Assembly: GCA_964247055.1 (NCBI GenBank)
Contig: OZ176053.1
Span: forward strand, 558,001-622,000
Length of the DNA stretch: 64,000 nucleotides
From: Paragordius varius
Lineage: Eukaryota; Animalia; Nematomorpha
Direction: 5' to 3'
Shown: one piece after another, positions 15,801-31,500 of the stretch
Numbering within the stretch: the first letter of the stretch is position 1
How the letters are laid out: each line of letters begins with the position of its first letter
Made by a program: the position numbers and the translations under genes
Notes under the pieces: model-generated
Database searches by the model: none
What the model was told of the DNA's origin: nothing
What the model saw: only the letters and a program-made list of their open reading frames with translations

Positions 15801-18685
15801 AAAGCATACTTTTGAATTTTTATATATAACTGATTGTTTTAAACTTTAAATTATAATATAGAAATGTAAATTGGTGACACAATCTATTATGTATTTTACG
15901 ATTGCGATTAAATAATTTTTATTGGATAAATTAAACGTTAAAAAAAGTATGGTTTTGTCTTTATAGTTTTACGTTTTGTCCCTATAACATCTTATTTTTA
16001 CAGTAAGTCGTTTTATAAATAAAAACCGTTTAGATCGCTAATTCAAGTTTTTATAAAAAGTAGAATCCCTATGTTAAGTTATAATACAGCGAAATATCCC
16101 GAGCTTAAATTTTTTTCTTTTTACATTTTTAATCTTAAAAAGTACAGTAAAAATTGAAATTATACGGATAAAACGTAATAAAGACAATTTTTTTTAAAAA
16201 CAACCATACTTTTCAAAACCTTAATATTTCTCATATAAGCTATTTAGTTACAATTGTAAAATGAACAAGTGATTGTGTTAGTAATATATATCTCTATTTC
16301 ACAATTTGCCATTTTAAAAAAATGAGTTATATTGAAATAAATCAAGATTTAGAAAAGTATGGTTTTGTCTTTTAAAAAAAGATATTTTTCGTTATATTTT
16401 TACGTTTTGACCCTCGTATAATTCCAATTTTTACTATAATTAAAATATCTAAAAAATATCTCAAAAATAAAAAAATATCCACCCGTTACAGGAGCCGTAT
16501 GAGCTCTAATAATTTTAGTGCAATGTTCTGTGCCCACATCCCATATCCGGACTGATTTATCCCACGAGGAAGATAGTATCACGTCTCTTTCATTATGATA
16601 AATGACTGATGTCACTTTTTTCATGTGACCTTAATGCAAATAGATAATAATTATAAAATCTGGTCTTAATTACCGCTGTAAAAGTTTTACAATTTTAGGT
16701 TTTACTAATCAATAAAAGGCATTTATAATATATATATATATATATATATATTTATTTAACTTGAGGATAGATATATAGAAAAAAAAGTAGTTGTAAAACA
16801 ATAAAAAATATGATAATTTTACAAAGGAAAAATTCGATTACCTATTATATTAAAATACTCATTTAAAAGCCACAAGTAAAAAACTATAACGCATTATTCA
16901 TTATATCATATTAAATCAATTATTTTAAGAGTATGGTATGAAAAAAAAACCAAAAAAGGTCATTTTTCCTAAAGCTTAATTTTATATTAAAAAAATTTGT
17001 AGAATAAAACAAAATTTTTTTATACCTTTAAACGTTGCCGCCACTTGATTGGTGGTTCGATCAAAAATAACGACATTTTTATCGTTGCCCCCGGTAACGC
17101 ATTTATTAGCATCTTGGGGTGAAATATCAAGACACAAAATCCCAGGATCACTGGCACTATGTAATCCTATGTGACTGGAAGCCTTTTATTAAAATAGACA
17201 TAAAAAAGTTTTCCATATGAAACAAAAATTAAATAAAACAAAAATAAAAAGTTAAAGACCAATATTTTTGTGTAAAAAACAGCATATTTTTTAATCAATT
17301 CAATATCGTTTTAAAATTCGAAATAAAGAGGAGGCATGTAAATTGATAAAGAGTCGATGTTTTAAAAAGTGTATAATCTTAAAGTAATACAAAACCAAAT
17401 ATCAAAAATTATTTGTCTTTTATTGATGCTATGCCTTTGTAATTTAAATATACCGTAAATTTTTTTGCCAAATAAAGGTTTTTAAAATAAAATACCAATT
17501 TAAAAGTTTTCATAGTTTCGGGTTTCGTCAACTCTTCCGGCATAGTCTTGACTCGTTTTTTGCGCTCGGTAGTTAAGATTGCGGCTTTGTCTTGTAACTT
17601 TTGTACAACCTAAAGATGGAAAAAACAAAAAAATATTAAAAAAAACATATCACAATAAAATTAAATATATAAGGTCAAACTTATTTGTTCCTAAGAAAGA
17701 GTGCAGTCCGATCAAAAATTTTATAGAATTAACTATATTAATTTCAATACATTCCGTAGTCTATTAAATTAAATTATAAAAAATCAAAATTTAAAAAGTA
17801 GTATGGTTTTCTTTGAGAAAACAACATTTGTCTTTATACTTTTACGGTTTGTCCGTATAATTTCAGTTTTTACTGAAAAACTAAAAATCAAACTTTTGCA
17901 TAGAAATATATATAAAATAAAAATATTACCGCATCAGTCATGCCCTCCTCTTCATCGTATTTAACGCGTTCGGGCTCCCCTTCAATCTGTGCGCCTGAAA
18001 AAATATGTGTATAAAAACCATGATTTATCACATTAATATCATTTTTAAGTTACATATTTAAAGATTATAAATAATTTTAAACTATCCATCTATCTCGTGT
18101 ATGAACATTTTAAAAGTTTACAAAATTTCCATATATATCTTGCTTTATAAATGTGTACAAAAGATCTAAGATTGATAAAAACAAACCTAATATCTAATTA
18201 AAATTTCAAATAAAAAAAATTATACCAGATTGATTAAGATGCTGTGGCTGTTGTACAACGACTTGAGGTTTAAGTGTGGCCAAAGCTTCCCGAGCAGCGG
18301 CGACTTCTTTATTGAGACGAGCGATAACGCGACACGCCGCATCATGTTGATATAAGGCATGTGACAACTCTTGTCGAGTCGTTTGAAGTTGCTGTCTAAT
18401 GCTAAAACTATGGAGCATAAGGGCATCCCATTCATCCTGAAGTGATTTAAGCAGGGCTGGGATACTCGTAGCCGATGGCGGACGTGGTTTTATAATGGTT
18501 TGATTGGGGTAAATTTTTACATCAATCAACATATCGAGCGTTAAAGGCTCGCCATTAACTGGATCAACTTCCCCCTTTTCTGCCAAGTACTTTTCAATAA
18601 TTCGTTTCTCAAATATAGAACCAGAAGCTGGTGAAACAACAGGATTTTCAGGGACCTCATTGGTAATTGCGCAAATTAGAGACAT
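12889..18685 (-). CDS. PRPF19: Pre-mRNA-processing factor 19 (U-box, coiled coil, WD40), complete, 536 aa
   Basis: Exons: 18685-18226, 17994-17930, 17609-17496, 17182-17026, 16629-16483, 15296-15094, 14464-14286, 13610-13471, 13034-12889. Translation includes the U-box [57 protein letters not shown], and the WD40 motifs [11 protein letters not shown] and [42 protein letters not shown]. Confidence 0.97.
13067..13373. mobile_element. MITE family A copy (PRP19 intron)
   Basis: CAGTAAAAATTGAAATTGTATGGAC ... GTCCGTATATAATTTCAGTTTTTATTG, with an internal (TA)n. Confidence 0.85.
16145..16436. mobile_element. MITE family A copy (PRP19 intron)
   Basis: TA|CAGTAAAAATTGAAATTATACGG ... CGTATAATTCCAATTTTTACTA. 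Confidence 0.85.
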
Positions 18686-25102: not shown

Positions 25103-25596
25103 TACATTTGTTAAAATATATTTTATAACAAAGCCCCCGATGGGCCATAGAATTATTTTTGTTGGATTTATAACTTAATATTTCCTAATCAATGTTAATT
25201 GGGCAGAAACATAAATTAAATGATATAAAGTTTAAAAAATGAGGGTTCATAACATTCTCCTTGTATTAATTTAAATAATTTTTTAAATTTATTTTGAAGA
25301 TAATAAGACATATTAACTGCAAAATAGATTACAATATAATCAATTGTATGGGATAAATGCATATTTGCTAAAAATTACAAATAAATGCTATCATAAAAAT
25401 GATTGCTATAAATGCCATATTAGCTAATAGATTGTTGAAAAAGCACCTCAAAAAATTTAGATCAGAAAAACTATACTCGCCATAAATACTAAAAATTTAA
25501 GTAAAATAAGCTATCACAAAATATAAAATCAATATTGCATAGTGATGGTAAAAATGAGCCTCTAAATAAAAAAAGAAATCATCAATAGGTTGTTAA

Positions 25597-26318
25597 TTAA
25601 AATGTTTCGATTCGAAACGGTGAGCCAGGGATATGTTCATTGCCCCATAGCACAGTTATAAAGTAAATTCCGCTTTCAGCAATTTCATAATTGACCACAA
25701 AAGTTGAATCCAATAAGGTGTCTCCATTTTGGCTCTCAAATTTGCTTATATCATCATTACTTTCGCTGTTATATCGTTTCAAATCACCATTAGGCAAAGA
25801 TTGAGATTTATCTGCCCTGGTGACACTTATATGTCGGACATATATTGGTTTAGTATCGTAAACTTCAGATATCGAATTACTAAGCGTTTTAGAAAAGGAA
25901 CTAGTTTCTGAGGTGACTATACCATTTGAAATTTGTGTGGGTACTATGTTTTCATTATAACTGAGGGTTGTTTGTGCACTACTATGGACAGAATAATTTG
26001 TTGATGATTGATAGCTGCTACTTTCAAACTGGGATAAAGCGAGTTTTTCCGTTTGTTCAGTGGTGATGTCAGATTCATTATTAGTTATGGTTGAGAATGT
26101 TTTTTGATTATTTATCAAAGACGTGTGACAGGATGATGAATTTACAATGTGGCCATTAGGTAAAAGCCCTGATTTAAATGGAGAAGAATTCCCCAAGCTT
26201 GTAATAGAATCAGTTGCAAAAGTGTTTGATGTCAAAATATTATCATTGCTGGGGTTTGGAGATTGCCTTCCTTCAGGAGTGTGGTAACCAATAATACCAA
26301 CCATTAACATACCATCAC
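25597..26318 (-). CDS. FLN: Filamin terminal exon B: second half of Ig24 with long S/T/N-rich inserts, ends in TAA
   Basis: Phase-1 acceptor taattag|GT. 722-nt open exon encoding [15 protein letters not shown]...[insert]...IYVRHIS...[insert]...[34 protein letters not shown], which matches the FLNA Ig24 end (TLVVKWGDEHIPGSPYRV). Confidence 0.82.
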
Positions 26319-27536
26319 CTAATTAATACGACAAAAAAATTAAAGAAAAATAAATTTAAATTATATAAAGAAAATTTGCACTGCAAACCATGCCTGCCTT
26401 ACAAAATCTTATATATAAAAAATCATGCATTTTAACTAAAGAGGGGTCCACACCTAAGATCAGATCGTTTCAACACAATCTTTCCTCTTGGGTACAGTAA
26501 GGAGCACTATTAAAGGCCATTTTTATATTTTGAAACGGTTAAAATGTGATTTTTAATGTCAGTAGCCCCCATGTATAAAATTATTCGTTTTTATTAATTC
26601 CATTTTTAGGGAACTGTGGAGAAAAATACATAGTCTTTATTCAAATATGTAACTAAGGAAAAGGAAAAATCGCATATACATGGGGTTACTAACATATAAA
26701 TTAAATATTGTTATTTTAGCCATTGAAAATACAGATATGACTTATGATAGAGCTCGTTACTGTATATATGCATTCCAGGCACACACTCAATTCAAGGGAA
26801 AATTTATACGGAAACACTGCAATACAAGGGGTGGGGGTGGCATAATAGTTCCTTTAGTGTTGGGTGAAGGATCATGCGTATTACAAAATAAATTACAGTC
26901 ATGTATCCTTTATTTTATCAAAAATTTATTTTTTTATAGTTAAATGGGTAAAAATATTCAGGTAAAAAATGAAAAAAAACAAGAGCTTTATGGTAATTCT
27001 TATACTTTTTGATGAATATGATAGATATTGTTAATACCATAGAGCTCTTGTTTTTTCCATCCTTTAACAAAGATTTATACCCATTTAACGAAAGAAAATA
27101 ATTTTTTCATAAATTAAAATAGTAAGAATGCAATGGTTGAACCTATATGTTTAAATATTATATATAAAAAGAAATCACAGCAAAGAGTGCAAAGGATGCG
27201 TATACAATTGAAAAGTATGAATACTATATTTTTTGTAAATCAAACAAATTTATTTTCATAATTGCACAATAATATACACAAGTAATAATACTTAAAATTT
27301 GTAATCTATTGTTAAATAATTTATATATATATAAGGTGTTTGTGAATGAGATTTATTGCATGATAGTTATATGAAAATATATGAGATACAGGCAATAAAA
27401 TATAAAATTGTTGACTGATGGGTCATAAAAAATGTAAAATTGTTTTATAAACTTAAAAAGGCGACTGACTGTGTGTGTAATCCAAAATATAGTAAAATAA
27501 ATAATTTACCAGTTTTTTTTACAATTTAGGCATAAA

Positions 27537-27588
<52 letters not shown>

Positions 27589-28230
27589 GTAAAATATAGG
27601 ATAATAACACAAAGTAATGATAATATACCATAAATACAGTAAAAATTAAATTTATACGGACAAAACGTAAAAATATAAAGACAAATATTTTTTCTAAAAG
27701 ACAACAAACATACCTTTTAAATCATTATTTATTTCAAACTAACTCATTTTCAAACAAAGTGCGAAATAGAAATATTTATACCTAACACAAATTCCATATT
27801 TAAGAATTGTCACTAAATAACTTATATGAAAAAAATTAAGAATTAAAAAGTATGTTTGTCTCTTAGTAGAATAAAAATATTTGTCGTCTTTATATTTTTG
27901 CGTTTTGTCCTTTCGTATAATTTCAATTTTTACTATATGTTAAGGAAATATAATGGAAAAAAGCGAACAAAAAGAAATAAGATTTTTTATATAATTTTGA
28001 CTTTGAAAGGAGAGCCAGGAACGTTATCACCATACTTTACGAGTAAAAATAAATCCCCCTTTTCAGCCACCACATAAGTTACTTGGAAATTAAAACTAGA
28101 TATGGTTCGAACACTTACCTCTTGAAGGGGCCCGTGGGGACCCCAGGCATTTACTGTAAGCAAATCTTGACCTGCGAACACATACATACGCACACATGTT
28201 AGGGTTTTTATCATGGCAAATATGTGTGCA

Positions 28231-28274
<44 letters not shown>

Positions 28275-28547
28275 ATTTACAATTCAAATTCGCCCTCAAA
28301 CAAATCCGCCCTAAAAAATATTATGTGTTTTTAGCCTAATATAACTTATTATTAATAAGAAATATAATCTTATGGCTTAGTTTATTATTTTTTTTGGTAT
28401 TATATGAATTTTAAACGTAATTTTATTTTTTTAAAATATATTAAAAAATATAGGTAACTTTTAATTTTAAACACATAATTTCTTTTAGGGGTAAATTTAA
28501 ATTGTTCAAGGCTAAATTTGAATTGTTTAAGGGTGAATTTGAAAAAT

Positions 28548-28581
<34 letters not shown>

Positions 28582-31500
28582 CAAATTTATCTAGAATTTT
28601 GGGCGCGCGTTAGTCACAGTCACCCCCCTTAAAACAAATAAAACCTCCACAGTTTTTTAAAATATCAATCTTTTCATCTTATAAAGTTTACAAAAAGTAA
28701 AACTCTCATTTTCAAAACTTACCAGCTTTACTGCAATTAACCATGAAAACGTTGTGTTTGTTAAGGAAAGCTTTTTGAAGACCCATACCCCGCGTTTCAA
28801 CCTTACTTGCATCCGATTTGAAGTGTGGAAGGGTGAATTCATTGGCTTTAGAACCGGATATTTTGGTAACTGTTTCAATACTTAAGTCTGAGGTTTGTCT
28901 ACGATCCGTACTGTGAGGAACTAAGCCACCCTTTTTACCTAAAACAAAAAAGTGTTAAAATTATATATAAAGTTTTAATAATAGGTGTGTGGGTAGAAGA
29001 TTGAAATAATTTTATATTCCTCAAATATGACAAGCGAGGACGTGGTTAGTAAGATTTATTAATATTATTTTTTTTAATAGTTTTGAGAAAAAATTTATTT
29101 TATATATAAATGAGTTTTTTTAAAATTGCTAATTGAATGTAAAATTCATCATTAATCGATTTATTTAACTAAAATTAGTTTATTAAGCGTGCATTTTATT
29201 GAAAACACATAAAATAAATTAAAAAAATACATAATTAAAAATGCAATAAAAAATTTAATCATACCTTCGACTATGGCTTTAAACGGACTGCCTGTGATAT
29301 GATGGCCGCCATATTTGATTGTTATATAATAGTTTCCAGGGACAGTTGGGGTCCATTTAAACTACATACATACGTATTTATATAAAAAATCATGTAATTT
29401 TATAAATTTTTAATAAATGTAAAAAAAATTTTTTGTGTATACTTTATATCCTTCAGAATCTTCATGAGATAAAATTTCAGTTTTGCCTGGCCCATCGATT
29501 TCAACGTGTAAAAGACTCGTGCCAGAATCCGCCGTGTTAACAAAAAACTCATTGGGTTGATCTATAACATAAACGGGTATTAAACATACACATTGTTTAT
29601 GGACAAAAAAAGTTAATTTGACAAAACAAAGCGCTTAAATAGACACTATCAATTAAATTTTGAAATAAAAATTGACTTAAACGTAAAAAATTGATAAAAA
29701 TAGCCAATATTTTTGCATAAAAACTCACTAAGAACACCGACAGAAAGACCCTTTCCACTACATTGGACTCTGAAGGGATCGCCTTCTACATCTTTGCCCA
29801 CACGAATACGGAAAGGTGAATGTCGAATATGGACATGATTGAATTTTATATTGACATAGTGTGTGCCTATATATAGTATCATGAATTGATTAATAAACAA
29901 GGAAATATTTATTGTTTAAACACAATATTGGGATAGAAAATATAAATAAGAAATTAACAGTACAAATTAAGATTATACGGAAGACAAAAAGTAAAAACAA
30001 TTTTTTTTTTAAAACATACAATAACCATACTTAATTGATTTTAATAAATATACAGTATGAATAAGTATACATTACCAGAAAGTTATTAATTATTGCCAAA
30101 TAGCATATGCAGCAAAGAGAATTATTATTGGGGCTAATATTAGTAAAAAATGAAATACTATAAGCCAATAATGCCCTTTGTTGTATATTGTGTTTGGCAA
30201 TAATTAATAACTTTCTAGCAATGTATACTTACTCATACTGTAAAATGTTGTTTAAATTAGAAAGTAGGAAATTGGCACATATATTAGATAGATATTGGTA
30301 AAACAATCAATTATATATTTTACGTTTGTAATAAGTGTGTGGTCGTCTATTGAAAAAAAATTTTGTCTATATATTTTTATACGTCCGTATAATTTCAGTT
30401 TTTACTGTATGTAATATGTATTATTGTATTTAAAAACATTTTTAAAGCTTTTTGATGATGATTTATTTTATAAATTAATAAAGTGATTTCGTTAGTTAAA
30501 ATCATTATTCCTACCAGTATATATGTAAAGATAGGTCTGGTAACATGATTAACAATATCATATTTCTTCTATATCAACTGGAATTACAATGCAACTTTTT
30601 TTATAAAATTAAAACATTCATAAACTGCGTAATACCTTTAACTTTAGGCATAAATCGGACTAAATAATCATCGTCCCCACTGGGTAATATATAGCAATCA
30701 TCTTCTTGGCCTGCAGGATTTACTACTTTGGCATCCAAATGACCTTCACAAAAAAGAAATATAAAATTAAATTTAGAAAGGTTTTGTAAGACACTCTATA
30801 TACAGAGAAAAAACTGAATCTGTTGTTTTTGAATAGAAATTATAATTAATAATAACTAAAATAATGTGTAATAAAAATTAACATTGTAAAATTTATAAAT
30901 TATCACGGCTATTTCGTGTATGTAACTTTGTACAAACATTCTTTATAAAAATTAGATAATCAGATTAAAATATTAGGATTAAACATAAGTCAAAGAAGCA
31001 TTTTATAGGTACTGATAAAAATTCATGAAATTTAAGGCTTTTAACTTTTATTCACAACTCTCTTAAATATGAAATCCATCATCACTCTAAACTAAATAAA
31101 GTTGATAGCCTAAAAAATCATGTATTTTATCTTAAGTAAAAAACTTGATTTAAAACTAACCCTTGGCGCCATTCATTTTAACGGTAAACGTGACGGGTTT
31201 ATTGTTAACGGCAGAACCGCTAATCATATCCTCCAGGCCAGTTACTGTAATTTTTCGGGCTTCACCCATGGGCGGAGTCACATACAGGGTGAAGGGTGAA
31301 TCGGGGATAGCTTTATCATTGAACAGTATATTGATTTTATATTCCCCCGCCTAATAAGAATTAAAGAGTAAGTACTTGTTTTTTATGATTAATAAGTTAT
31401 TTTTAATCGGGCTATGACCATTAAAATTATAAAAATATAAATTGTCAAAAATTAAAATTTAAAAAGCTTTATCATTGAACAGTATATTGATCTTATATTC

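Follow-up and report, generated by a model that had tools for sequence, protein, structure and literature searches.

Probable alternative last exons for the dimerization repeat of a filamin gene in the nematomorph Paragordius varius

Filamin crosslinks actin through the pairing of two chains, which is mediated by its immunoglobulin-like (Ig) repeat 24, Ig24. Can a single filamin gene encode this pairing repeat in two different versions? The question is raised by a locus of the nematomorph Paragordius varius, on a stretch of 64,000 nucleotides from contig OZ176053.1 (GenBank assembly GCA_964247055.1, positions 558,001 to 622,000 of the forward strand). This whole stretch is referred to here as the window, and all positions are counted from its first letter. 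Towards the 3' end of a minus-strand filamin gene, an exon that breaks off halfway through the last repeat (exon X, 28723–28938) is followed by two further exons, A and B, either of which could supply the missing half. Exons A and B are probably a pair of alternative last exons. Exon B is a real spliced exon, and the acceptor predicted for it is in use. A splice junction between X and B is quite likely to exist, and translation of both isoforms into protein is likely.

The filamin gene is long, and its 3' two-thirds lie inside the window, which has a G+C content of about 25%. The exons from 63789 to 27990 are colinear with residues 618–2687 of the 2687-residue filamin of the crinoid Antedon, and many of them (29245–63789) lie upstream of exon X. 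The alignment to Antedon begins at residue 618, and the gene extends past the window on the high-coordinate side. The best filamin matches are about 44% identical to it and belong to several phyla (amphioxus, an acorn worm, a crinoid, a fish and an oyster). The repeats are of the Filamin/ABP280 family (PF00630), and the three exons considered here cover complementary parts of the 93-position Pfam profile: X covers positions 2–32, A covers 42–93, and the end of B covers 61–93. Exon B scores 31.8 bits, above the cut-off of 26.9 bits; X and A, which are half-domains, fall short when each is taken alone. The order expected of a filamin tail, hinge 2 and then a last repeat orthologous to Ig24, is found both in the alignment of X and A to Antedon (residues 2568–2625 and 2624–2684, respectively) and in the best single-domain PDB matches of A, which are to Ig24.

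One donor and two terminal exons

Judged by its sequence, exon X encodes a hinge-2-like stretch and strands A and B of the last, Ig24-equivalent repeat. It ends in phase 1 with a single G, followed by the donor GTAAGT (GT at 28722–28721). The intron between X and A (28172–28722, 551 nucleotides) runs from GT to AG. Exon A starts at 28171 behind the acceptor TTCGCAG/GT, the slash marking the border of intron and exon, and its coding part (27987–28171) encodes 61 residues for a compact set of strands C–G before a TAA stop at 27989–27987. Exon B starts at 26318 behind the acceptor TTAATTAG/GT; the AG of this acceptor is at 26319–26320 and the tract preceding it is 72% pyrimidine. The coding part of B (25597–26318) encodes 240 residues, made up of strands C–G and two inserts, and ends in a TAA stop at 25599–25597. 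The donor of X is shared in the sense that both acceptors (CAG/GT at 28171 and TAG/GT at 26318) complete its last G to a GGT glycine codon and lead into an open frame in the same phase. Each terminal exon thus has a stop codon of its own, and each also has its own 3' untranslated region (UTR), that of A at 27710–27986 and that of B at 25270–25596, both with approximate ends. The sole AATAAA in each (27733–27728 in A, 25293–25288 in B) is about what chance would give in AT-rich stretches of this kind.

Is this arrangement used in RNA? Four sequencing runs of one 2024 study contain exon B, and the kind of run is not on record. The contigs of runs X1, X2, X4 and X5 were placed on positions 25200–30200. 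Runs X1 and X2 cover this stretch evenly throughout and therefore behave as DNA. In run X4 (24 million letters), which shares its sample with X2, the exons are covered and the unique intron bins are at about zero. Three joints with GT..AG ends are found in X4 within these 5 kb. X4 behaves as RNA, and is read as such because it covers exons but not unique intron sequence and because the skipped ends of its joints, CT..AC in plus-strand letters, are GT..AG in the direction of the gene.

The junction of X to A was directly observed. One X4 contig, with a depth of 327, joins 28169 to 28721, and the cut can be moved by two letters to give 28171/28723. X4 covers exon X, with depth falling off on both sides, and its contigs are unbroken over 28024–28169 in exon A. 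A further contig (28053–27765) enters the 3' UTR of A.

Across exon B the depth of X4 is 167–224, and it falls off towards 25200, with 81 at 25367–25533 and 46 at 25200–25366. The contig that covers the 5' part of exon B (26124–26319, depth 187) ends at the acceptor. It shares 30 letters with a contig that continues into the intron (26290–26678), the depth of which is 8.4. In the DNA run X2, by comparison, a contig (26124–26407) passes the acceptor unbroken. Exon B is a spliced exon because the X4 contig breaks exactly at the acceptor and the intron contig is about 20-fold shallower, a pattern typical of an acceptor in use when contigs are built from a de Bruijn graph.

To what is exon B spliced? 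Since the G at 26319 is part of the exon B contig, a G must likewise be the last letter of the spliced partner, and exon X has one there. The letter before this G is A in the intron and T in exon X (...GCT G), which fits the position at which the contig breaks. The reading frame, the completion of the domain and the shared last letter point to X as the upstream partner of B. Both 3' UTRs are covered by X4 and the unique sequence between them is uncovered: no unique expressed segment was found between the 3' UTR of A and exon B (X4 depth 0 at 26703–26869 and 27204–27537), and the sole X4 signal there comes from high-copy repeats. The depth of exon X (560 at 28748) is about the sum of the 327 at the A joint, the 187 of the 5' contig of B and a small rest, although a tally of this kind carries little weight, since the depth of a contig says little about expression level.

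An initial annotation of the window, made from its letters, had proposed this exon structure. The coordinates, phases and translations that it gave for X, A and B were all correct when checked against the sequence, the 28723/28171 junction that it predicted is the one seen in the X4 contig, and the acceptor that it placed before 26318 is exactly where the X4 exon contig begins. It had also held both terminal exons to be usable. This stands in that A and B are both transcribed in X4; the corresponding 28723/26318 junction is not among the joints listed for that run. Its wider proposal, a switch between a conventional dimerization module and one with large disordered, phosphorylatable loops, is supported in part.

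Two versions of one half-domain

Residues 3–59 of exon A match the solved Ig24 structures of human filamin C (1v05 and 8pa0, E 1.7e-12), filamin B (2eed) and filamin A (3cnk). On these matches, exon A is the conventional second half of Ig24. Exon B carries the MLMVG..G..TP motif, as canonical Ig24 does (the crinoid counterpart of its start reads NMLMVGIAGPKTPCEE), and its PGSPF motif and Ig strands are intact. Over strand C, exon B is identical to the aligned deuterostome Ig24 sequences at 6–7 of 10 positions and exon A at 3–4 of 10. Over strands E–G, each of the two is identical to the Ig24 of other phyla at 11–19 of 35–36 positions. Strands E–G are also the sole part over which A and B can be aligned with one another; here 14 of 32 residues are identical in the alignment of the two exons, and counted over strands E–G they share 14 of 35, no more than the range found for either one against other phyla.

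Are A and B then copies of one exon? Their shared position, phase and half-domain speak for a duplication, of which the sequences alone are no proof. The high divergence of the two that the initial annotation had reported is borne out by these figures. Its view of A as the conventional version and B as the aberrant one holds for length. It fails for strand C, where B is the nearer of the two to canonical Ig24.

Exon B was modelled alone with AlphaFold2, with other Ig24 tails as the alignment. Strands were predicted at residues 4–12, 160–168, 205–212, 216–224 and 234–238. Residues 24–150 and 173–198 had no secondary structure, with a predicted local distance difference test (pLDDT) value below 50. 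From the model and from composition, insert 1 (25843–26268, about residues 17–158) lies between strands C and D; it has about 145 residues, 46% of them Ser, Thr or Asn, with pLDDT 30–46. Insert 2 (25708–25800, about residues 173–203), delimited by pLDDT and composition, lies between strands D and E; it has about 30 residues and is acidic, with 24% Asp or Glu. Both inserts are predicted to be disordered. Between them, the modelled strand at residues 160–168 (25813–25839, VRHISVTRA, block pLDDT 66–79) is the putative counterpart of the canonical strand D, EILVKH. The last three 10-residue blocks, which hold strands E–F–G (25600–25707), have pLDDT 91, and this part superposes on Ig24 of FLNA (3cnk) with a root-mean-square deviation of 0.8 over 32 residues, of which 47% are identical. 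In a Foldseek search of the model against the PDB, filamin repeats were the only matches, and weak ones, with nothing at E 0.001 or better; they are weak because the model is a half-domain with disorder. The initial annotation had described exon B as retaining its Ig strands around two loops of a Ser/Thr/Asn-rich type. The model agrees with it, with strands C, D, E, F and G predicted and both loops disordered.

The inserts have no match to any Pfam family above noise. Tandem repeats were considered as their origin and rejected, none being present inside exon B. The last 35 residues of the exon (203–235) match the Pfam Filamin profile with E 2.6e-7. A search of exon B against 1.84 billion representative sequences gave 286 matches, all of them to the last 35 residues or so as generic filamin repeats. 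The inserts were matched by none of these 286, and B-type tails in other species may hide behind the representatives, since isoforms are clustered at 50% identity. Against a set of 5.8 billion proteins, exon B, the open reading frame of exon A and exon X had no match, a weak negative because the length filter drops full-length filamins. The exact 237-residue open reading frame of exon B is not on record in public assemblies, and a protein atlas gave only clusters of generic filamin repeats, with scores up to 0.84.

The open frame of exon B is itself beyond what chance would give. From stop to stop it has 241 codons; no other frame in the window, on either strand, is as long, and the remaining five frames of the same 722 bases contain 12–36 stops. 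None of 20000 shuffled versions of the exon stayed open. This bears out the earlier remark that the exon is open for 240 codons in an AT-rich background. The exon is in frame in phase 1 only, the phase in which exon X ends.

How would the two exons be used? The last repeat would be split after strand B by a phase-1 intron, and the single donor at 28722 could be joined to either terminal exon. The proximal exon A would provide a compact second half of Ig24, with its own poly(A) site near 27710. When the acceptor of A is skipped, the donor would join exon B, 2.4 kb downstream, which would provide the same strands C–G together with a disordered Ser/Thr/Asn-rich C–D loop of about 145 residues and an acidic D–E loop of about 30 residues. 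Two filamin isoforms would result, identical through strand B of the last repeat and differing in the half that holds strands C and D. These two strands reportedly form the dimer interface of vertebrate Ig24. A hydrophobic dimerization signature has been described for filamins (PMC3143143). The B isoform would be expected to be made as a protein and to fold, and its loops may serve as a docking or regulatory surface or may alter pairing. Tentatively, the choice of terminal exon may yield two filamins with different pairing modules, in which the 145-residue C–D hairpin loop of B changes the partner or strength of pairing or adds a surface for docking or phospho-regulation.

Alternative explanations, variants and surrounding sequence

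Several points weigh against a pair of working alternative ends. A single run of a single sample, the kind of which is not on record, supplies all of the RNA evidence, and run X5, a 2017 candidate RNA run under the same species label, gave nothing on 25200–30200. The joint of X to B is absent among the 15 of 70 X4 joints that were listed; the contig expected to hold it would have about 60 letters between branch points and would be hard to place. All three variants found in exon B are nonsynonymous (A34T and G50A in insert 1, T221S in strand F), none of them breaking the frame, and all four in exon X are synonymous and at third positions (Fisher's exact test, 1/35). This hints that B is less constrained than X, although the numbers are tiny. 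The protein-set searches found no homologue of the inserts and no locus of a relative. In addition, a large loop at the C–D hairpin could hinder dimerization rather than regulate it.

Could exon B be spliced and polyadenylated and yet be no more than a tolerated by-product? In this case it would be an old duplicate of the last exon that is drifting, its loops swollen with AT-biased Asn/Ser/Thr filler, and exon A would carry the function. AT-rich genomes such as those of Plasmodium and Dictyostelium commonly have such inserts in loops. The genome here, at about 25% G+C, the low complexity and predicted disorder of insert 1, its lack of a homologue and the split of variants between B (3/3 nonsynonymous) and X (0/4) all fit this explanation. 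A frame of 241 codons in sequence of 25–36% G+C is, however, not kept open without selection, given that all of the shuffled versions closed and that the other frames hold so many stops. In addition, neither the Ig strands nor the PGSPF motif is damaged, no variant breaks the frame, and the RNA depth of B is of the same order as that of A. We therefore regard a by-product as unlikely.

Could exon B instead be joined to something other than X? It might lie untranslated behind the stop of A, reached from a donor in or after A, or it might belong to another upstream exon or promoter. The absence of the X-to-B joint from those listed would agree with this, as would a consensus-like donor inside exon A (GAG/GTAAGT, 28113–28121, GT at 28118–28117) and the break between X4 contigs at 28024/28053, where the depth steps from 327 to 126. 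Against it, the half-domain missing from X is exactly what B encodes, in the phase of X and with Ig24-specific motifs; there is no other unique expressed segment between A and B; and the break of cover exactly at the acceptor contradicts a separate promoter directly before B. This makes a partner other than X very improbable. The donor inside exon A was examined as a route to B and rejected: it is in phase 0, from which the frame of B stops after four codons, and an X4 contig is unbroken across it, so that it appears not to be used to any appreciable extent. As to the break at 28024/28053 inside exon A, no listed variant or joint accounts for it.

That X4 is DNA, or contaminated with DNA, so that the cover of exon B is genomic, would accord with the unrecorded kind of the run but is scarcely credible, given the empty unique intron bins, the three GT..AG joints in 5 kb and the break at the acceptor of B, a site that DNA contigs from this sample cross.

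The alternative-last-exon reading of A and B is the one retained here. A number of other observations were made in the surrounding sequence. At 28748 in exon X, X4 has a synonymous GTT>GTA variant (depth 216 of 560) that is absent from the X2 contigs of the same sample, probably through a bubble popped in the contigs or through a pooled sample. The intron upstream of exon B is retained at a low level in X4 (8.4 versus 187, about 4%). Two more introns of the filamin gene, 29362–29442 (81 nucleotides) and 29562–29728 (167 nucleotides), both GT..AG, are confirmed by a single X4 contig of 1150 letters. Repeats in the introns at 26870–27203, 27538–27704, 28373–28539 and 30043–30200 have a depth of 10^5–10^6 in the DNA runs, against about 250 for unique sequence, and give a signal in X4 too. 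This implies repeat families like miniature inverted-repeat transposable elements (MITEs), present in hundreds to thousands of copies. At least three perfect microsatellites, (TA)n with 14–23 units, are found at 27538–27583, 28234–28272 and 28550–28578, in introns or between the terminal exons. An open frame of 159 residues on the minus strand (18206–18685), probably the next gene downstream of filamin, appears to resemble the U-box N-terminus of PRP19.

Filamin tails compared

How does this tail compare with those already described? As in vertebrate Ig24 (FLNC 1v05, FLNA 3cnk, FLNB 2eed), the repeat is the last one and follows a hinge-2-like stretch, with A matching its strands C–G, and B its motifs and its strands E–G. 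Unlike vertebrate Ig24, its second half is present in two alternative exons, one of which has about 175 extra residues in the C–D and D–E loops, and it is known here from sequence.

The nearest likeness for the loops is in repeat 20 of FLNC, where an insertion of 82 residues confers Z-disc targeting and myotilin binding (PMC7216277). There, too, a long isoform-specific insertion lies within a filamin Ig repeat. That insertion, however, belongs to a separate paralogous gene, involves no choice of terminal exon and has no sequence similarity to the inserts of B. By analogy, it could serve as a working model for the loops of exon B.

Other filamin variants are known. These include skipping of hinge 1, the 41-residue var-1 deletion and the heart-specific human FLNB var-2 and var-3, in which the last four repeats are missing and the dimerization domain with them (PMC2199218). 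FLN-1B and FLN-2B of Caenorhabditis elegans and forms in Drosophila arise as truncations or from alternative starts (PMC3143143). The C-terminal variants resemble the present case in that 3' processing of a filamin gene alters whether or how its chains pair (PMC2199218, PMC3143143). They differ from it in that the dimerization domain is lost, whereas here both forms complete it.

No report of alternative versions of the filamin dimerization repeat was found in the open literature searched, where the variants are ones that lack Ig24 and none has alternative Ig24 halves; the arrangement had been offered as unfamiliar among described filamins, and so it appears. Likewise, in a pattern search of the 150 filamin matches listed, none had its strand C motif widely separated from the WG..IPGSP motif. 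The oyster filamin isoforms within one cluster all have a single common C-terminus.

The mechanism in itself is ordinary. As in alternative last exons generally, one donor faces two acceptors, both exons come with a stop and an AATAAA of their own, and use of the distal exon needs the proximal one to be skipped. Different from the general case is that both exons are diverged versions of one half-domain. What is new is the application of a known mechanism to the dimerization half-domain of filamin, in which one version would also place a large disordered loop in the hairpin of the interface.

The interest of the finding is limited by an obscure host and by RNA evidence from a single run. If the two tails are used as proposed, the locus would be a further case of a long disordered insertion tolerated in an Ig fold, beside that of FLNC repeat 20, and a gene with two complete but different interface halves would be a natural experiment on what the C–D region tolerates. 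The stability of filamin pairing sets its working force range (PMC10348313). The choice of isoform may be a way of tuning crosslinking or docking and, if the different pairing of the two forms is true, it would amount to a splice-controlled switch of filamin dimerization at a crosslinking node.

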